Shown: positions 7,350 to 20,868 of the stretch, in pieces | Layout: each line of letters starts with the position of its first letter | How positions within the stretch are numbered: the stretch's first letter is position 1 | Origin: Prasinococcaceae sp. CCMP 1430 | Lineage: Eukaryota > Plantae > Prasinodermophyta | Assembly (NCBI GenBank): GCA_013416795.1 | Contig: RQSC01000002.1 | Location: 34,547-56,847 of the forward strand | DNA: 22,301 nucleotides | Direction: 5' to 3' | Program-made: the position numbers and the translations under genes | The notes under the pieces: generated by a model | What the model was told of the DNA's origin: nothing | Databases searched by the model: none | What the model saw: only the letters and a program-made list of their open reading frames with translations

Positions 7350-7353
<4 letters not shown>

Positions 7354-7392
<39 letters not shown>

Positions 7393-7476
7393 GTGTGTGT
7401 GTGTGCGTGTGTGTTCGTGCGTGTGTGCGTGTGTGTGTGTGTGTGTGTGTGCGTGCGCGCGCGTGTGTGTGTGTGC
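7354..7476. repeat. (TG)n microsatellite upstream of RPB8
   Basis: Directly visible dinucleotide run, preceded by a short (AG)n. Confidence 0.95.
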
Positions 7477-7533: not shown

Positions 7534-7815
7534 ATGGCGCTGCTGCTCGAGGACATCTTCGAGGTGGAGGAGCTCAACCCCGGGGGGAAGCGCTTCGACA
7601 AGGGTGCGTGTGGCGTGCGCGCGGGGGGGGCGTGTGTGTGCGTGTGTGTGTGTGTGTGTCCGCGTGCGTGTGTGTGTGTGTGTGTGTGTGTGCGTGTGCG
7701 CGGGCCCTTTGATGTGTGTACGCGCGTCCCACGCACGGGTCCGCAGCGACGGTCGCACGTAGCACGAGCGCTCGCACACGGCTGCGTCAACACACACTCG
7801 CGCTCACACACACAC

Positions 7816-7879
<64 letters not shown>

Positions 7880-8283
7880 CACACAACACACACACACACA
7901 CACACTACACACACTACACACACACACGCACACCTGCCTCGCCTTTCGCCTCCGCAGTGGACCGCGTCCGTTGCCGCTCCCAGCAGCAGGAGCTCGAGCT
8001 CCAGCTGGACGTCAACTGCGAGATCTACCCGCTGCCGGAGGGCGCCGCGTTCTCGCTGGCGCTCGCGCCCACGCTGAGCCCCGACGGCGCGCCCGACGGC
8101 GACACCTTCGACCAGAGCGGCGCGAAGAGCCTCGCCGACGGGTACGAGTACGTCATGCACGGCATGGTCTTCAAGATCGAGGAAGGTGAGGGGAGGGGCG
8201 ACGGGCCGGGCGTGCGCGCGTTTGAGCGCGCACGTACGCGCGTGTGTGTGCGTGCGTGTCTGTGTGTGTGTGTGTATGTGTGT

Positions 8284-8333
<50 letters not shown>

Positions 8334-8649
8334 GCGTTTGTGTCTGTGTGCGCGTGTGCGTGTGTTTGCGCGCACGCGCGTGTGTGTGTGTGCGTGTTTG
8401 CGCACGCATCAGCACACGCGCTCGCGCGGACACTGACAAGTGCGCACGCACATGTACACACACGCACGCGCGCGCACGCACACGCACACGCACGCGCGCA
8501 CTCACACGCGCGCAGTGAGCGGCTCCGCGGGCAAGGTGTCGGTGACGGCGTCCTTCGGCGGGCTCCTCATGCTCCTCAGCGGCGACAAGCGCTCGCTGGG
8601 CGAGCTCGCGCTCGACCAGAAGGTCTACCTGCTCGTCAGGAAGGTCTGA
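7534..8649 (+). CDS. RPB8: RNA polymerase I/II/III shared subunit RPABC3 (RPB8); exons 7534-7603, 7958-8185, 8516-8649
   Basis: The spliced product is [69 protein letters not shown] introns at 7604-7957 and 8186-8515 are both phase 1 and restore the frame. Confidence 0.96.
7805..7932. repeat. (CA)n microsatellite at the 3' part of RPB8 intron 1, complementary to (TG)n at about 7632-7700
   Basis: Directly visible. Confidence 0.95.
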
Positions 8650-8951
8650 GCGACGCGAAGTAAAGCACGGAAAAAACTCGCGCGTACGCACGCGGGGGGC
8701 ACGCGCGCGAATGCCGAGCTCGCGCGCGGAGGTGAGCGAGCTAGGGACAGGTCTAAAGGTACACACGCACGCACACACACACGCACACACACACGCACTG
8801 TGAACACACACACTTACACACGCACACACACACACACACAAATACACGCGCGCACACACACACACGCACACGAACCAACGAGTCCGGCCCGCGCCCTGTG
8901 GTACAACAAATTACTCGTGTCATCGTCCCCCAAAAAGCAACACCCCTCTCC

Positions 8952-9354
8952 CTACTTCTCCACGCCGCGGTACTTGAGCTCCTTCTTGTCGAGCGACTTG
9001 ACCTTGACGGCGGAGACCAGCGTGAGCAGGCCGAAGACGCAGCCCGCCGCGAAGGCCGCCTGCTGGTAGAGCGCCTCGGCGGCGGCCGTCTTGAGCGCCA
9101 CCCACACGTTCACCAGGCTGGCGGCGAGCATCGCCTTGACCTGCAGGTCCTGCATGGCCGCCACGCGCACGAAGGCGCGCTCCGAGCCCACGTCGCGCAC
9201 GCGCAGCTTGAGGTCGCCCGCCTCCATCCTCGCGATGGTGTCGGCCATGACGGAGATCTGGTCGGGCGCGAACGCGTGTGCGCGCGCGTCAGCGTGCGCG
9301 TGCGCGCGAGTGTAACAACAGACGCAAACTCACACACACACACAAACTCTACCA

Positions 9355-9408
<54 letters not shown>

Positions 9409-11074
9409 CGCACACACAAACGAACAAGCGCACACACACACACACACGCACACCAACACAAACAAGCAAACGCACCTTGTCGGGCCCCTGGAAGAGGTTG
9501 ACGAAGGCCTCGTTCTGCCGCTGCCAGCGCTTGACGACGTCGCGCTTGAGCACCTCCCCGGCGGCGCCCTCCTTGCTCAGGCCCAGCAGGTCCTCCGCGT
9601 AGGGCCGCGCGATCTCCGAGATGTCGAAGCGCGGGTCGAGGCTCTTGCCCACGCCGTCGAGCACGCTGAAGGCGCGCACCACGAAGGTGAACTCGGCGGG
9701 GAAGCGGAAGGGCTGGTCGGCCGCCACGCTGAGCAGGTCCTCGCCGATGTTGCTCAGGATCTTCTTGCGCACCGCCGTCTTCTCGTCCTTGGTGCGCTGC
9801 TCCTTGTACCCCCGCTGTGTGCATGTGCGCGTGTGCGCGTGTGCGTGTGTGTGTGTGCGTGCACGCGCACGGGCGCGTCAGAGCCTTGCGCAGCACGCGC
9901 GCGCGGGAGCGCGGCGCGGCGCGCCGCAGGGGGAGGGCGCGCACGCACGTCGCGGAAGTCGCGGCCGTCGGCGTCGCGCTCGGTCTTCTGCTTCTTGAGC
10001 CTGTCGCGGAAGGAGCCCAGGAAGAAGCGCGCGGTGCGCGTGACGGCCATGCGGTCCTTGCCCGGCACGAGCACGCCCATGGTCTCGAGGCTGTTGACCA
10101 CGCGGTTGGGGTTGTCCTCGTACACGCCGTAGAAGCACTCGAGCAGGCCGCCGCGCACGCCGCCGGGGATGGAGCCGCACATGCCGAAGTCGTAGATGAC
10201 CAGCTTGCCGTCCTCGGCCACGCCGATGTTGCCCGGGTGGGGGTCGGCGTGGAAGAAGCCGAAGGTGAGGATCTGCTGCAGGTAGCTCTCGACGGCCTGG
10301 CGCGCGATGAGCTTGCGGTCGAGGCCCATCGCCTCGATGCGCTCCACGTTGGAGATCTTCACGGCGGGGCAGTACTCCATGGTGAGCACCTGCGAGTTGG
10401 TGTGGCTGCGGAAGATCTGGGGCACGCGCACGTAGTCGAGCCCCGCGTCGACGAAGTTCTTCCGGAAGCGCTCGGCGTTGCTCGCCTCGGTGTTGTAGTC
10501 GATCTCCTCGTAGAGCACGCGCGCCGTCTCGTCGTAGATGGCCACCCAGTCGCGCGCGGCGCCGTCCGTCTTGGGGTCGGTCTTGTTGAGCCACTTGGCG
10601 ATGGCGCGGATGTTCACCAGGTCGATGTCGAAGAGCTCCTTGAGGCCCGGGCGCTGCACCTTGACGATGACCGTCTGGCCGTTGAGCTTGGCGAGGTGCA
10701 CCTGGCCCAGCGACGCCGCGGCGAGCGGCTGCGTGTCGAACTCGTCGTACTTGTCGCCGATGGGCACGCCGAACTCGCTCTCGACGATGGACACCACCGT
10801 CTGCGAGTCGAAGGGCGGCACCTTGTCCTGCAGCTCGCTCAGCTGCTCGGTGAACTCCTTCTCCAGCACGTCCACGCGCGTGCTGAACTGCTGGCCGATC
10901 TTGATGAACGTGGGGCCCAGGCGCAGCAGGCCCTCCTTCAGCCACACCGCCAGCGCGCGGCGACGCTTGGCCTGGTTCTCGGGGGTCATGCCGCCCTCCT
11001 TCTTCGAGTACGTCCACTGTCGTGGGTGTGTGTGTTTGTGTAAGTGTGTGTGTGTGTGTGTGTTTGTGTAAGTG

Positions 11075-11127
<53 letters not shown>

Positions 11128-11770
11128 GTGTGCGTGTGCGTGTGTGTGTGTGTGTGTGAAAGGGCGCGCGCGTGTGTATGCGGTGGGGCACCATTCTTCC
11201 GTCAGAACCGATGGCACACCGCACCAACAGCATGCGGGTGGATACCGAGGGCATGGATGGGGCGCGCACACGCATAGACGCGCGCGCAAACCTACACACG
11301 CGCGCGGGCGCACACACACACGCACGCGCGCACGCATAGACGCGCGCAAGCGCACACACGCATACACACGCACACATACACACGCGCGCGCGCGCACACA
11401 CGCACGCACACACACACGCGCACACACACACACGCTCACACACACACACGCACGCGTGCACACACACACACACTCACGCGAGCGCGCGCACCTTCTGTCC
11501 GATGAGCACGCGCTTGAATACGAACACGAGCACGAACGACCAGATCTCGAAGGTGCGCTGCCAGACGGCGTAGCTCTTGAAGCGGTTCCACTCGCCGCCG
11601 GCCGCCTTGGAGACCACCGCGTCGCTGCTGGCGCCGTCGCGCCGCGCGATGTTCTCCCACGCGCGCTTCTTCTCCGCAGCGAACACGTCGGGGCGAGCAA
11701 CCTCGTCGGAGGCGGCCACGGCCACGGCGGCGGGGGCAACGGCGGGGGAGGGGGTGGGGGTGGCGGGCGC
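8952..11770 (-). CDS. ABC1K8: chloroplast ABC1/UbiB atypical kinase, ABC1K8/OSA1-like; exons 11770-11492, 11016-9949, 9814-9476, 9257-8952; first exon not located
   Basis: Motifs include [90 protein letters not shown] and GDLKLRVR, with C-terminal hydrophobic helices. Phase-0 GT-AG introns at 11491-11017, 9948-9815 and 9475-9258 join the frames. Confidence 0.93.
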
Positions 11771-11808
11771 CTGTCGGAGCGGGGGTGCGTGTGTGTGTAG
11801 GCGCGCGC

Positions 11809-11844
<36 letters not shown>

Positions 11845-12059
11845 GGGTAGGTCAGCGCGTGCGCGCATGCTCGCGGGTGCACACGCGTAAACACATGCGC
11901 AAAAAGCCGCACACGCACATGCGCACGCACACACGCACACACACACACACGCACACACGCGCACGCGCACGAGCGTGGGTTCGGGTGCGGCGAGCATTCG
12001 CATGCGCGTGCGCGTCTTGCACGCAGACGTGCTCGTTCGCGTATGCACACGCGTACGTG

Positions 12060-12077
12060 GTCGCACACACACTCACG

Positions 12078-12112
<35 letters not shown>

Positions 12113-12144
12113 GCGCACACACACGCACACACACACGCACACAC

Positions 12145-12204
<60 letters not shown>

Positions 12205-12221
12205 NNNNNNNNNNNNNNNNN

Positions 12222-12309
<88 letters not shown>

Positions 12310-12326
12310 CACACACACACACACAC
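12060..12326. repeat. long (CA)n microsatellite containing an N gap
   Basis: Directly visible. It is probably the GU-rich part of an ABC1K8 upstream intron on the minus strand. Confidence 0.95.
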
Positions 12327-12907
12327 TGTCTCTCTCCGCACGCCGCAACTTGGCCCGCAAGGCAGTCGGCGCTGCTATGCGGAGGCTGCAGGTAAGGCGG
12401 CCTGACGAGGGCGAGGGCCGGCAACGGCCGTCGTCTCCCGGACTCCCCCCACGCCAGGTGGATGCTGCGCCCGCCTCGGTCGGAGGTGTGGTCCCCTCGG
12501 CATCTTTTTTCTCTCGCGCACGCCACCGCTGTCAGCACCTCGCGCTCGCGCACCGGCAGGAGCCGCCGCGTGGGAATCCTCGAGTGGGCTTGCGCCGTGC
12601 GCGGCCTGGGCGTGTGCGCACTGCGAGTGGGGCCGCGCGGTCTGCTCTGCTCTTTCTTTTTGGTGTGTCTGTGTGTGAGAGTGTGTGTGTGTACGCCGTT
12701 GTACGGTACTGCACGTGCGGTTGGCCTGTGGCAGTGGCCACATGGTCGACGCCGCGAGCGCCCTCCCCCCCTTCCTCCTGCCGGGCGCGCCCCGCCCGCT
12801 GGTGCCACGGAGTGCCGCCGCCGCCGCCTGAGGCAGGGGGGGGAGGTGGGGAAGGGAAGGGGTGTGTGTGGGGGGGCGGGTGGGGTGAGGTAAAGAGAGA
12901 GAGAGGC

Positions 12908-12909
<2 letters not shown>

Positions 12910-12962
<53 letters not shown>
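12910..12962. repeat. (CT)n microsatellite
   Basis: Perfect CT run, preceded by a short complementary (AG)n at about 12893-12905. Confidence 0.95.
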
Positions 12963-12965
<3 letters not shown>

Positions 12966-12999: not shown

Positions 13000-13836
13000 T
13001 TGGTGCGACCTCGGCGCCCACCCGGGAGCACTGCTGGCATGTCTGCTCCTGGCGGCAGCGATGCCAGTGTGTCAGTGTCCTCCGAGCTGGCGGGGCGAAC
13101 CGTGCGCATAAAGTACGCGTCGAGCACCGAGCTGCAGGCGCTCGAGCTCGTGCTGCAGGACCCGACCACCGGGGCCTCCCTCTCGCTGGCCCCGGGCGGC
13201 CACGGCGGGCTGGCGTTCGAGCTGGGCATCGACGTCAATACGGGCATGGAGGGGAAGGTAGCCCTCGTGCCATCGCTGACCACCAACGCATCCCTGCCGG
13301 CGTCGGAGATGGCGACGCTGACCATGGTGGACGTGGCGGCGACGGAAGAGGCGCCGGGCGGGGTGTGCGTGTCGTCGCCCCTTGCGGTCGCGGAAGACTC
13401 GGCCAGCGTCCTCGAGGTGGATGCGGGCGTGAGCGCGTGCGAAGGTCAGGGCGACGGCACTGCCCCCCCTCCTTCGCCTCCGGCGGAGCAAAGCGCGCCT
13501 CCGCCGCCTCCGAGCCCGGCTACCGCTAATAATGATAGCGGCAGCGACGGAAGCGGTGATGGCGGCGGCGAGGGGCTGAGCGCCGGCGCCATCTTCGGCA
13601 TAGTCATCGGGTCCACGGTGGGCGGCGTGCTGCTCATTGCGCTGGTGGTGTTCGCGCTCTCAAGGCGCAGCCGCGATCGGCGCCCCTCGGCGATCTCGGC
13701 ATCGCCCTCACAGACACCGCACGACAGCGACTTCACCAACAACTGGGGCGCCAGCAGCGAGTCGGCCGCCGGCGCGACGCCGCCCGTCAACCGCCCCTCC
13801 CGCGGGGGCCGCGCCCAGTTCGTCGAGCTCACGTAA
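13000..13836 (+). CDS. uncharacterised single-pass membrane protein: beta-rich ectodomain, Pro/Gly-Ser stalk, TM helix, cytosolic tail; true start uncertain (first ATG 13039)
   Basis: GLSAGAIFGIVIGSTVGGVLLIALVVFALSRRSRDRR is a classic TM helix with a basic stop-transfer. The stalk includes PPPSPP/PPPPPSP, and the composition is protein-like. Confidence 0.75.
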   Translation: MVRPRRPPGSTAGMSAPGGSDASVSVSSELAGRTVRIKYASSTELQALELVLQDPTTGASLSLAPGGHGGLAFELGIDVNTGMEGKVALVPSLTTNASLPASEMATLTMVDVAATEEAPGGVCVSSPLAVAEDSASVLEVDAGVSACEGQGDGTAPPPSPPAEQSAPPPPPSPATANNDSGSDGSGDGGGEGLSAGAIFGIVIGSTVGGVLLIALVVFALSRRSRDRRPSAISASPSQTPHDSDFTNNWGASSESAAGATPPVNRPSRGGRAQFVELT

Positions 13837-13975: not shown

Positions 13976-14171
13976 AGTCGAGGCCCGCCGCTGATAAGGA
14001 ACCCTGACCTTAAATACGTACCGCTGTACTTACTGTACGTGTACTGTAAAACCTTAACCTGATCCAAACACGGCCAACTGTCGGCGGCGGCTCGCCGGCT
14101 GCGCGCGCGCGCCGCCGCACCTCTGCGGCGTCGCCACAGCGCACCCCGCACTCGGCAGCAGCGCCCCGCTN

Positions 14172-14424
14172 CGTTGCAACGGCGCGCAACAATATTGGGA
14201 TGGTATATGACGCCCAAGGACGCCACGCCGAGGCGCTGAAAGAGTACGAGGAGGTGCTGCGAGTCAAGCGCGCGGCGCTCGGCGATGACCATCCGAGCGT
14301 TGCAACGACGCGCAACAATATTGGCTCGGTATATGACGCCCAAGGACGCCACGCCGAGGCGCTGAAAGAGTACGAGGAGGCGCTGCGAGTCTGGCGCGAG
14401 GCGCTCGGCGACCGCCGTATCTAA
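14172..14424 (+). CDS. fragment of a kinesin-light-chain/nephrocystin-3-like TPR array; two near-identical 126-bp (42-aa) units
   Basis: VATxRNNIGxVYDAQGRHAEALKEYEExLRVxRxALGD(DHPS) occurs twice, with units starting at 14172 and 14298. The fragment begins at the single n at 14171. Confidence 0.8.
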
Positions 14425-17625: not shown

Positions 17626-18593
17626 CGTGTGTGTGTGTGTGCGTGCGCGCGCACGCGCGTGCGTCTCCCCGCGCGCGCCGGCGCGAGGCGGGCGCCTGCG
17701 AGCGCCCGAGTGGCGCGCCGAGAGAGTGCGCGCGAGCGAGAGGGAGCGAGCGCGCGTACACACAGGCACACACACGCGCACACACACCCACGCGCGCACA
17801 CACACACACACACACACGCACGCACACACACACACGCACACACTCACACGCACACGCACACACAGACACACACACGCACACACACACACACGCGCGCGCG
17901 CGCACACACGCGCGCACACCCCCCCCTGCGCCCCTGCGCGCGCGAGCGCTCTTATCCAATTTCGGGCCTGATCGGAAATTCGCTCCCTACTTTCCGCGTT
18001 TTCACACTTTGCAGTACATCACTATAAATTTCAAAATGCCTGGAGATCATTTCGCGGATTAGCTTTGGATCGCGATTCCGGCCCGCGCGCGGCGGCTGCC
18101 GGCTTCCGGGAAGATCTCCCCCCCGGCCGCGTCCGCCCCGGCGGCCTCGCGGAAGAAGTCCCATTTCGTGACTTCAAATCGCGTTTTGTCACGTTCGAAA
18201 TATCATACAATTCCGCGCTTTTGTCTTGTAGTTATGTTGCGTGTTGATCGGCGGTCTTACGAAGTGCGTAGATTTCGATGGGATTTGCTGCGGTTTATGA
18301 TGAGGGAACGAATGTCGGAGATTGCGGGGGCGCGCGATTCGCGGCGCGCGCGTCCGGACGGCCCACGTCGCGCGCGCGCGCGCGCGGACATCAGAAGCAG
18401 GGCGCGCGGCGACGCGCGGCGGAGCGCGGCGTCGGCGGCTTTGGGGCGGGGCGAAAGGGGCGGTGTTGGGGTTTTGGTAGGAGGGTCTATTTATAGTGGA
18501 CTGAAGCAACGACGTTTCGTCACGCATGCCCGACGGCTTGCCGGCCGCCGGGCACCGCTTCGTGCGCGAGTATTGGTCATTTCGCCGAAATAG

Positions 18594-18910
18594 GCCTTCC
18601 TGCCGCAGCTGCGGGGACGCCGTGTCCTTCTGCACGAGGACAACCAGGCGGTGGTCTCCGTGCTTACGCGGCTAACCAGCGGATCGCCGCGCATGATGGA
18701 GGAGCTGCGCCGCTTGTGGTGGCTGCTCGACTCCAACGAGGTGACCATCCGCCCCCGGTACATCCGCAGCGCGGCAAACGTATGGGCCGACGCCCTCTCC
18801 CGCGAGACGGGGGTGGCCGAAGCGTCGTTGGCACCCCAGTTGTTCGACCGCGCCGCTCGGCGGTGGGGCCGGCCCTCCATCGACCGCTTCGCCACGATGC
18901 GCACGGCGCC
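18594..18910 (+). mobile_element. relic of a DIRS-type (tyrosine-recombinase) retrotransposon: RNase H C-terminal half and start of the downstream methyltransferase-like domain
   Basis: LRGRRVLLHEDNQAVV..TSGSPRMMEELRRLW..IRPRYIRSAANVWADALSR...WGRPSIDRFA matches DIRS1 RNase H (DN..V; N..AD.LSR) followed by the WG..xDxFA motif. No RT or YR is present in the window. Confidence 0.85.
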
Positions 18911-19634
18911 CGCGCGGTGCGCGCCGCGCGCGTTTTTTGCGGTCGTGTGCGGGCGCGCGCTCGCGCGAGCGGGGGCGGCGCGCCACAACGCGCATGGCCC
19001 TCCTCCCCTGTCGGGATGGAGAACCGACGGAAGTGCGTCACCATGCGCGTCGCGCGCACCGACGCCAGCGGCGAACGCTTTTTCGTATCTCGCGAATGTA
19101 CGCGCGCCGCACCGCGAGGAGCCTTCCACGCGCCGCCGGCGCCCCCCCCGAAAGCCGCGCACCGAAAACTACAAAAGTACGTCATTCCTAAATGCAAAAC
19201 ATCCAAATTCGCACGCGCGGCCGCCATGCCGAAATTCCTAACCGTAAAAGGTACCAAAACCGCGTTTTCAAAAAGTAACATTCACCGCATATTATAAATT
19301 CAAAACTACGACTCTGTGCTGAAGCGCTGCGAATCCGAAACTATCTACGGGGAAATGGTTGCCGCGCGGCGGCTGGGCTGCGCGCGCGCACGCATGGCGC
19401 GCGTGTGCGTGTCCCTGCGTGTGCGTGTGCGTGTGTGTGAGTGTGTGCGTGCGTGTGTGTGTGTGTGTGCGTGCGTGCGTGTGTGTGTGTGTGTGTGTGT
19501 GTACGCGCCCTCACGCATCCGCCCCCCTCCAGATGCCTGCACGCTGACGCGCGCGCGCGCCACACAGCGCGCGCCGCGCGCCAGCCCCGCCGCCGCAGCC
19601 GCTCCCGCCCCTCCCCCCAGCCGCGCCGGCGGCC

Positions 19635-20868
19635 ATGGCCAAGGACAAGAAGGAGAAGAAGGAGAAGAAGGAGAAGAAGGAGCTCAAGGCGGAGAAGAAG
19701 ATCTCCAAGTCGGCCAAGAAGGAGAAGAAGGTGCGTGCGTGCGGCCCCGTGTGTGCGTGCGCGCGCACGCGCGCGCGCGTACGCAGACGCAGCGCGAGTC
19801 TGCGACCGCGCGAGCGACGTTGGCGCTGGTGTCTCACACGCGCACACACACGCCTACACACACACGCACACACACACACGCGCACACACACACACACGCG
19901 CGCACGCACACGCCCTCCCTGATCCTCCCAGTCGTCTGCCTCCGAGGCGGCGCCGGCGGCCCCGCGCCGCGTGGGCACCCCCGGCGTCTTCGCCAAGCCG
20001 CTGGCGGGCGAGGCGCTCTCCGCGCAGCTGCTCGCGCTCGTGGGCGCGGCCGCCAAGGCCAAGCAGCTCAAGCGCGGCGTCAAGGAGGTGCGCGTGCGCG
20101 CGGCTAGGTGCACACACGCGTGCGTGCGGCGGGCGTGCAACGCACACACACACACACACACACAAATACACACACACACGCAAGCCCACGCGCACTGTCG
20201 CATACACACGTGCGCACACGCGTACGAACACACACACACACACACGCGCACACACGCAGACACGCAGGCACGCGCACGCGCGCGCGCGCGTGCGCACGCG
20301 CATCCTCGCGCTGACATCCGCCGTCGGCGCTACGCGCATGCGCGTGCGTGTGCGTGCGTGTGTGTGTGTGTACGCAGGTGGTGAAGCACGTGCGCAAGGC
20401 GCCCTCCGGCCTGTGCGTGATCGCCGCGGACATCTCGCCCGTGGACGTCATCATCCACGTGCCCGTGCTGTGCGAGGAGGTGCGAGGGCGCGCGCGCAGC
20501 CGAGCTCGCGCGCGGGGGGGGCGCGCATATGAGCGCATGTGCTCGCACCGGTCGCTCGCGCGATTGCACGATCTCACACACACGCACACGCGCGCACACA
20601 CACACACACACACGCACACACACGATGACACACACACGCACGTGCACACACACGATCACACACACACTCACACCAAAAATTGTCACGCCAGGCGGGCATG
20701 TCGTACGTGTACGTGTCCTCGAAGGAGGCGCTGGGCGCCGCGGGTGCCACCAAGCGCCCCACGAGCTGCGTGGTGGTGGTGGACGGCGCCAAGGGCGGCG
20801 CCAAGGGCGACTCGGGCGTCGCCGCGCTCTACAAGGACGCCGCCAAGGCCGTCAAGGCGCTGCACTAG
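19635..20868 (+). CDS. NHP2: H/ACA snoRNP subunit NHP2 (L7Ae family); exons 19635-19730, 19932-20087, 20378-20479, 20692-20868
   Basis: The spliced product has [39 protein letters not shown] and [23 protein letters not shown]. There are three phase-0 GT-AG introns. Confidence 0.95.

Follow-up and report, generated by a model that had tools for sequence, protein, structure and literature searches.

The introns in a stretch of 22,301 nucleotides (nt) from Prasinococcaceae sp. CCMP 1430 (GenBank assembly GCA_013416795.1, contig RQSC01000002.1, positions 34,547 to 56,847; hereafter the window, numbered from its first letter), which its sequence identifies as nuclear DNA of the marine green alga Prasinoderma coloniale, are filled with repeats of a consistent orientation, such that G/T-rich sequence follows the donor and C/A-rich sequence precedes the acceptor on the sense strand. 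Our findings suggest, with modest confidence, that microsatellites have spread through otherwise ordinary introns, and that two rules of composition, each specific to a position, hold the orientation of these repeats, and not required hairpins. According to this explanation, U2-type introns with a GTGCG donor, usually one CTGAC and a CAG acceptor would have had their non-signal sequence overrun by fast-mutating GT/CA-type microsatellites, and two separate constraints on the pre-mRNA, each tied to position, would fix the orientation of the repeats. The first would favor G/U-rich RNA after the donor, where GU repeats and GUGCGU units extend and resemble the donor consensus. The second would keep the region from the branch site to the acceptor free of AG, rich in C and A, and poor in G and U, as a stand-in for the polypyrimidine tract in a genome of about 70% GC. 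Given the complementarity of G/U-rich and C/A-rich tracts, hairpins would arise as a matter of course; these may fold long repeat insertions away and render them harmless, with no matched pair of arms needed for splicing.

The polarity is strong and largely confined to introns. Perfect GT/CA runs of at least 8 nt cover 33% of the intron bases, 0% of the coding bases and 9% of the other non-coding bases. When splice-site consensus positions are left out, the TG-type and CA-type dinucleotides on the sense strand of the eight complete introns sum to 255:77 in the first thirds and to 98:317 in the last thirds. The mean TG position precedes the mean CA position in seven of these eight introns (sign test p = 0.035), and a ninth intron, only half defined, agrees. 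An earlier reading of this DNA made without database searches (the sequence-only reading) had described GT-rich tracts after the donor and CA-rich tracts before the acceptor, and Tandem Repeats Finder (TRF) places such tracts where that reading had put them, including a GT tract at 7632-7698 and an AC tract at 7790-7933 in the first intron of RPB8 and matching tracts in introns of a minus-strand ABC1 kinase gene. The two exceptions it had named, one reversed intron and one with CA repeats only, are likewise evident from the dinucleotide counts.

The complete introns belong to three genes: RPB8 (plus strand, start codon at 7534, exons 7534-7603, 7958-8185 and 8516-8649; Pfam PF03870), the ABC1 kinase gene (minus strand, exons 11492-11770, 9949-11016, 9476-9814 and 8955-9257; PF03109) and an NHP2/L7Ae gene (plus strand, start codon at 19635, exon ends at 19730, 20087 and 20479; PF01248), with the Pfam searches of these spliced genes carried out one exon at a time. 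The ABC1 kinase junctions 9257|9476, 9814|9949 and 11016|11492 are spliced in metatranscriptome contigs of three marine runs. Furthermore, residues 152-814 of P0121, an ABC1-kinase protein from MMETSP/UniRef named for P. coloniale and derived from a culture transcriptome, form an exact and contiguous match to the translations of the four exons, so that the three complete introns of this gene are doubly backed. Similarly, one RNA contig links 7957-8183 with 8514-8664 and thereby removes RPB8 intron 2. In total, four introns are spliced out in RNA contigs and a fifth acceptor is placed at 11771, while the borders of RPB8 intron 1 and of the three NHP2 introns were drawn from Pfam homology, continuity of the reading frame and GT-AG ends, and not from RNA. 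Each of the eight introns has GTG(C/A)G at its start and CAG at its end. By their GT-AG borders, used in mature RNA, the window introns are ordinary U2-type spliceosomal introns.

The fifth acceptor belongs to an upstream intron of the ABC1 kinase gene (3' part, 11771..12326, minus strand), which is known at its 3' end only and was left out of the counts of complete introns. On the sense strand it displays a long TG-type tract followed by a CA-type tract before the acceptor at 11771/11772, corresponding to plus-strand CA at 11880-12326, interrupted by a gap of N at 12205-12221, and plus-strand GT at 11789-11845. The sequence-only reading had listed this intron among its examples; the order of the tracts and the RNA-placed acceptor agree with it, but the donor and the upstream exon do not lie in the window. 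The RNA contig match stops at 11772 and continues into sequence without a match in the window, and neither this loose end nor P0121 residues 1-146, which have no match in the window, revealed an exon upstream of 11771. The 5' exon or exons, corresponding to P0121 residues 1-151, are thus absent from the window, as is the RNA-contig sequence beyond 11772; the N gap that interrupts the long (CA)n tract is probably where they were lost.

A closer examination of the individual introns reveals both the common architecture and its variants. In RPB8 intron 1 (7604..7957, plus strand), delimited by the Pfam RPB8 match and the reading frame, the donor GTGCGTGT is followed by the GT arm, a unique core, the CA arm, a C/T-rich tract and CAG, and the TG:CA ratio moves from 64:1 in the first third to 1:86 in the last. 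RPB8 intron 2 (8186..8515, plus strand) passes from a GT tract (8242-8285 by TRF) through a (CA)22 block (AC, 8287-8331) and GT-rich sequence (8332-8403) to a CTGAC located 79 nt from the acceptor, with CA/CG-rich sequence (CA-rich at 8443-8514) reaching the acceptor and an AG-free zone of 73 nt. Read on the sense strand, the last ABC1 kinase intron (9258..9475, minus strand) consists of GT-rich sequence, (CA)25, GT, and a CGCAC-rich part with CTGAC 31 nt from the acceptor. The ABC1 kinase intron at 9815..9948 (minus strand) has nearly no GT arm; from its CTGAC, a CA-rich tract that varies in length extends to the acceptor, and its last third has a TG:CA ratio of 1:25. The ABC1 kinase intron at 11017..11491 (minus strand) carries a long GT-rich 5' arm, a conserved unique core with CTGAC, and then CA, (GT)25 and CA up to the acceptor. 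CA repeats had been reported in the sequence-only reading to stand in place of a polypyrimidine tract at the acceptors 8515, 9815 and 11017, and CA/CG-rich, T-poor sequence indeed runs up to all three.

In the NHP2 gene (L7Ae family, plus strand), intron 1 (19731..19931) combines a short GT/GC 5' part with a CA arm (19835-19913) and a C/T tract containing CTGAT. Intron 2 (20088..20377) is the reversed exception, with CA-rich sequence at 20143-20302, CTGAC, and a GT tract (20339-20371) immediately ahead of the acceptor; its TG:CA ratio is 8:41 in the first third and 26:7 in the last, and the 108 nt before its acceptor are free of AG. Intron 3 (20480..20691) has a CA arm only (20575-20673), the GT arm being absent.

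One argument that had been offered for a link to transcription, namely that the polarity flips with the coding strand, fails: (GT)n...(CA)m reverse-complements to (TG)m...(AC)n, in the same order. A GT-then-CA order is its own reverse complement and appears on the plus strand for genes of either orientation, and the flip is therefore automatic and uninformative. The link to splicing lies in the phase of the pattern, with exons at CA-to-GT transitions and introns spanning GT-to-CA.

As a separate observation on the same repeats, the tract upstream of the start codon is of GT type on the sense strand in all five genes that have one. These tracts are found at 7353-7475 for RPB8 (plus strand; also present in the wild allele L082), 19401-19502 for NHP2, 12663-12692 for the gene at 13040, 11880-12326 for the ABC1 kinase gene and 17758-17919 for a small open reading frame at 17626. 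Judged by position and composition, they may represent introns of 5' untranslated regions or a promoter-proximal skew.

Several features remain constant beneath the variable repeats. In 2,214 intron bases the dinucleotide AG was counted 37 times where 125 would be expected, a 3.4-fold depletion, and it is missing from the last 23% of every intron; the AG-free stretch before each acceptor measures 68-187 nt, the reversed NHP2 intron 2 included. Exactly one CTRAY motif is present in six of the eight introns (five CTGAC and one CTGAT), always in the 3' half, and it is conserved in wild alleles, although its distance from the acceptor, 9-185 nt, is atypical. The last 37 nt contain only 1-6 T in seven of the eight introns and are C/A- or C/G-rich, so they do not qualify as polypyrimidine tracts, and a C/T tract at the 3' end is found only in RPB8 intron 1 and NHP2 intron 1. 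At the other end of the introns, the GT arms are composed of GUGUGU and GUGCGU units, similar to the donor consensus.

Parallels exist for the 3' part of this pattern. In Chlamydomonas reinhardtii, intron 3' ends have a C-enriched region instead of a polypyrimidine tract, and simple repeats, both di- and trinucleotide, are overrepresented in constitutively spliced introns (Labadorf et al. 2010, PMC2830987). Prasinoderma thus resembles another GC-rich green alga in having C-rich and not U-rich sequence before the acceptor and in the association of repeats with introns; however, that paper describes no G/T-rich 5' arm, CA microsatellites or complementarity, and the Prasinoderma pattern is much more extreme. 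Similarly, AG avoidance shapes the composition of the polypyrimidine tract in other eukaryotes (Yildirim and Vogl 2023, PMC10946897), where, as here, AG is strongly depleted ahead of the acceptor and the asymmetry of composition is put down to the avoidance of spurious 3' splice signals. Unlike those zones, the ones in Prasinoderma are unusually long (68-187 nt) and achieve avoidance mostly by loss of G and T, which leaves C and A, and not by enrichment in pyrimidines. For the genus itself, our literature search on Prasinoderma nuclear introns, microsatellites or repeat introns found nothing relevant; according to the P. coloniale genome paper, simple repeats make up 0.98% of the genome and introns average 225 nt.

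Wild alleles provide further evidence that the orientation outlasts the repeats themselves. Seven metagenome contigs (L001 and L082-L087, from TARA Oceans and other ENA or Logan marine assemblies) carry the locus with exons 99-100% identical to those of the window, while intron lengths differ considerably. For instance, the ABC1 kinase intron 9258-9475 measures 135-160 nt in wild alleles vs 218 nt in the window, RPB8 intron 2 measures 288 vs 330 nt, and the ABC1 kinase intron 11017-11491 measures 289 nt in L087 vs 475 nt; the intron 9815-9948 ranges from 122 to 158 nt across six wild contigs, with the difference located in its CA tract. Despite these large differences in sequence and length, TG comes first and CA last in every wild allele. 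The maintenance of polarity in seven of the eight introns and in all wild alleles, through such turnover, counts in favor of rules acting on composition.

The blocks that create the strongest hairpins of the reference are three perfect (100%) stretches of opposite type, 45-52 nt long, at 8287-8331, 9356-9407 and 11076-11126, and none of the wild contigs spanning these positions contains them. RPB8 intron 2 of L082 lacks the (CA)22 block; (CA)25 is missing from the ABC1 kinase intron 9258-9475 in four distinct alleles from five contigs (L001, L082, L084/L085 and L086), which retain GT-rich sequence on the 5' side and the conserved part on the 3' side; and the intron 11017-11491 of L087 and L086 has a plain CA-rich 3' arm without the (GT)25 block. 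Wild RNA is joined at the same junctions as the window, and together with the absence of the inner blocks from wild alleles this also counts for composition over required hairpins, with the qualification that the RNA represents a further wild haplotype and its link to the alleles without these arms is therefore indirect. The three inner blocks could have arisen by strain-specific inversion or template switching inside a repeat, or could be artifacts of assembly from short reads. Many perfect runs in the window measure 44-54 nt, and those other than the three blocks cluster at 50-54 nt, which suggests collapse to the k-mer size; contigs assembled from DNA runs, which break at every repeat, give no independent view of the blocks.

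Two further observations on the wild alleles concern individual introns. The unique core of the intron 11017-11491 (11160-11260, minus strand; about 90 nt, containing GGTTCTGACGG) is well conserved, whereas the flanking repeats are not; a small nucleolar RNA was considered here, and an Rfam scan of the window returned no matches, hence none for this core. In L001 (1660-1690, compared with window 9440-9480), the GT-rich 5' arm has a deletion that appears to shift the donor onto a GTGCGC repeat unit, so that AAG, the last codon of the exon, would become AAT. GT arms can, if this shift is true, supply replacement donors.

Comparable polarity is found in other algae. As controls, we used loci of ABC1K homologues from Joint Genome Institute (JGI) metagenomes, with at most 66% identity, which had been found while seeking more alleles. 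Four of them display the G/T-to-C/A polarity, with TG:CA ratios passing from 40:8 to 4:59 in L044, from 15:1 to 0:17 in L038, from 160:51 to 47:127 in L081 and from 91:11 to 18:72 in L047; L044, L038 and L081 are nearest to chlorophyte proteins. The introns of L081 carry GT and CA microsatellites, whereas those of L044, L038 and L047 obtain G/T-rich starts and C/A-rich ends from other units. This shared polarity without dinucleotide repeats, together with the depletion of AG even in the reversed intron, counts for the two rules proposed above. AT-rich, plant-like control loci have TG above CA at both ends (e.g., 72:35 and 64:37) without polarity, and a group of control loci at about 50% GC has no polarity either. 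These observations also bear on the proposal, made in the sequence-only reading, that this alga invented independently a system of opposite polarity to that of teleosts: the opposite order stands, but independent invention in this alga is weakened by other algal loci that share the polarity. The literature search found no paper describing G/T-to-C/A intron polarity in green algae.

Two side observations come from this set of loci. An intron of L044 (8535-8780) reproduces the polarity with a different unit, the 5' half carrying (CGGT)n and the 3' half its complement (ACCG)n. L088, an ABC1K relative 86% identical, is a short and uninformative contig with CCCTAA-type telomere-like repeats at 841-868 directly after the open frame, and may be chimeric.

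Among the alternatives, the one that survives best is structure-assisted splicing, in which GU and CA arms pair co-transcriptionally, gather the donor, branch site and acceptor, and replace a weak or absent polypyrimidine tract, as a mirrored version of the teleost system; we nevertheless regard it as doubtful. In the (AC)m-(GT)n structured introns of teleosts and lampreys (Lin et al. 2016, Genome Res, PMC4691745), AC repeats come downstream of the donor and GT repeats upstream of the acceptor, a precedent which indicates that such a system can work. That system is marked by co-occurrence of the two arms above independence, with long arms paired to long ones, by a need of pairing for accurate use of the 3' splice site and by splicing without U2AF2. 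Prasinoderma is similar in its complementary dinucleotide repeats near opposite intron ends, its obscured polypyrimidine tract and its large predicted hairpins. It differs in order, as the sequence-only reading had recognized, with GT after the donor and CA before the acceptor in seven of the eight introns (PMC4691745 for the AC-first order of teleosts). It also differs in that its host is a picoplanktonic green alga and that natural alleles without inner arms exist, and there is no sign of the co-selection of arms known from teleosts, arm lengths being unmatched across the eight introns, which are too few for a co-occurrence test.

The predicted folds divide along similar lines. Against dinucleotide shuffles, minimum free energy (MFE) z-scores are -4.6 for RPB8 intron 1, -8.6 for RPB8 intron 2 and -7.4 for the ABC1 kinase intron 11017-11491, so that three of the eight introns fold clearly better than their shuffles, and several introns of wild alleles reach -4 to -6. 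The five remaining introns, at -2.3, -1.2 (9815-9948), -2.3, -2.1 and -0.3 (NHP2 intron 3), are no more stable than shuffles. Complementary repeats near both splice sites are clear in RPB8 introns 1 and 2 and in the ABC1 kinase introns 9258-9475 and 11017-11491, weak in NHP2 intron 1 and absent in two other introns; arms are complementary in most introns, and T-poor 3' ends in five of the eight would suit a replacement of the polypyrimidine tract. Only in RPB8 intron 1, however, does the MFE structure join the 5' arm to the 3' arm across the intron. The strong folds of RPB8 intron 2 and of 11017-11491 are local hairpins of adjacent opposite blocks, two of them in RPB8 intron 2, and across the introns the ends are not closer in graph distance in the predicted folds than in dinucleotide shuffles.

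Nor do the arms appear to be fitted to one another. The duplex energy between an intron's own 5' and 3' ends averages -68.8 kcal/mol, against -71.5 kcal/mol for ends of different introns, with scattered ranks; arms are 72-91% complementary, and interruptions in one arm are not mirrored in its partner. The lengths of the two arms do not correspond either. Between alleles, the CA arm of RPB8 intron 1 measures 144 nt in the window and only about 32 nt in L082, although the GT arms of the two alleles are similar. Two introns, 9815-9948 (with nearly no GT arm) and 20480-20691, have CA arms without GT arms, and their CA tracts are predicted to be mostly unpaired. CA arms without GT arms, the lack of own-arm preference and the unmirrored interruptions count for composition rules; together with the reversed intron, the inner hairpin blocks missing from wild alleles and a fixed polarity that pairing alone does not explain, they also speak against dependence on structure. 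Of the structure-guided splicing that had been proposed, the clear folding of three introns stands, but a general rule is not supported, with ends no closer and CA-only introns present. In these predictions, pairing of the arms would generally not be needed for splicing; as a requirement it is weakly supported.

Repeats and stems with roles in splicing are familiar from other organisms. Intronic CA repeats (bound by hnRNP L) and UG repeats (bound by TDP-43 and CELF) act in vertebrates as protein-bound splicing signals independent of pairing; Prasinoderma shares the intronic CA and UG repeats, known here from sequence alone. In yeast, intron stems shorten the distance from donor to branch site or from branch site to acceptor. 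A local hairpin in Prasinoderma could likewise neutralize inserted length, e.g., that of (GT)25 with CA between CTGAC and the acceptor of 11017-11491, but the yeast stems are specific sequences with tested function, unlike the Prasinoderma hairpins, which are generic repeats absent from wild alleles.

A purely mutational origin appears improbable to us. In that scenario, slippage would expand proto-repeats seeded by the donor GTGCGTG and by acceptor-proximal CACAG or CGCAG, RNA constraint would be limited to the core signals, and local inversion or template switching would make the adjacent blocks of opposite type. GT tracts do often begin at or near the donor, wild alleles are extremely polymorphic in length and sequence, repeats also fill 9% of the non-intronic spacers, and the opposite-type blocks of the reference lie inside tracts that are uniform in wild alleles, as partial inversion of a repeat predicts. 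However, tracts also begin 28-56 nt from the donor, polarity outlasts complete turnover of sequence, the same polarity occurs in other algae without dinucleotide repeats in their introns, and the 3.4-fold depletion of AG across whole introns points to selection. We infer that the orientation is maintained by selection on the contrast between splice signals, and not by mutation alone. Other marine algae are known to carry introners, and GT...CA does form an inverted repeat around a unique core, but an introner-like or fold-back transposon whose terminal inverted repeats became the arms is hardly credible, as the arms are generic microsatellites, all-vs-all blastn of the eight introns yielded microsatellite matches only, and no target-site duplications were found at the eight junction pairs.

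Several points weigh against the explanation by composition rules that we favor. Its sign test has just eight complete introns behind p = 0.035, the CTRAY motif is a putative branch site by sequence only, and the 5' G/U rule is likewise putative. Repeat lengths in short-read assemblies are unreliable, and the intron borders of the control loci are approximate, being ends of tblastn segments. On the side of structure, three introns fold far better than their shuffles and the end-bridging fold of RPB8 intron 1 is predicted in both the reference and the wild allele L082, in spite of the shortened CA arm of the latter; these folds may reflect a structural contribution in some introns, which is not supported as a general rule. 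Generic complementarity, in which any GU arm pairs with any CA arm, would moreover serve structure without any matching of arms.

Other features of the window lie outside the introns. Two of its single-exon open reading frames, looked up by their exact product, have no database record. The open frame at 18594-19238, between AT-richer spacers, resembles a retroelement RNase H or integrase region (LHEDNQAVV...ANVWADALSR) without a Pfam match and may be a transposon remnant. A 126-nt tandem duplication at 14172-14411 (1.9 copies, 92% identical) adjoins a single N at 14171 upstream of a methyltransferase gene, and a perfect (CT)27 occupies 12910-12963 upstream of the gene at 13040.

The comparison of fish with Prasinoderma, both with complementary repeats but in opposite order, and with pairing seemingly dispensable in the alga, helps in telling the effects of RNA structure from those of composition. 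Considering the control loci, G/T-to-C/A intron polarity may be common in green algae. It is possible, although we hold it unlikely, that Prasinoderma and perhaps many green algae use a polar code, in which a G/U block after the donor and a complementary C/A block in place of the polypyrimidine tract pair and work in the choice of 3' splice site; such a code would mirror the teleost system by convergence and would have arisen close to the base of the green lineage. If only constrained growth of microsatellites is involved, the finding mainly calls for caution in annotation and in taking hairpins as function. If the polarity extends genome-wide, it would represent a simple grammar of intron recognition in a very GC-rich, early-diverging green alga without a classical U-rich tract, and would allow better gene prediction in such genomes.

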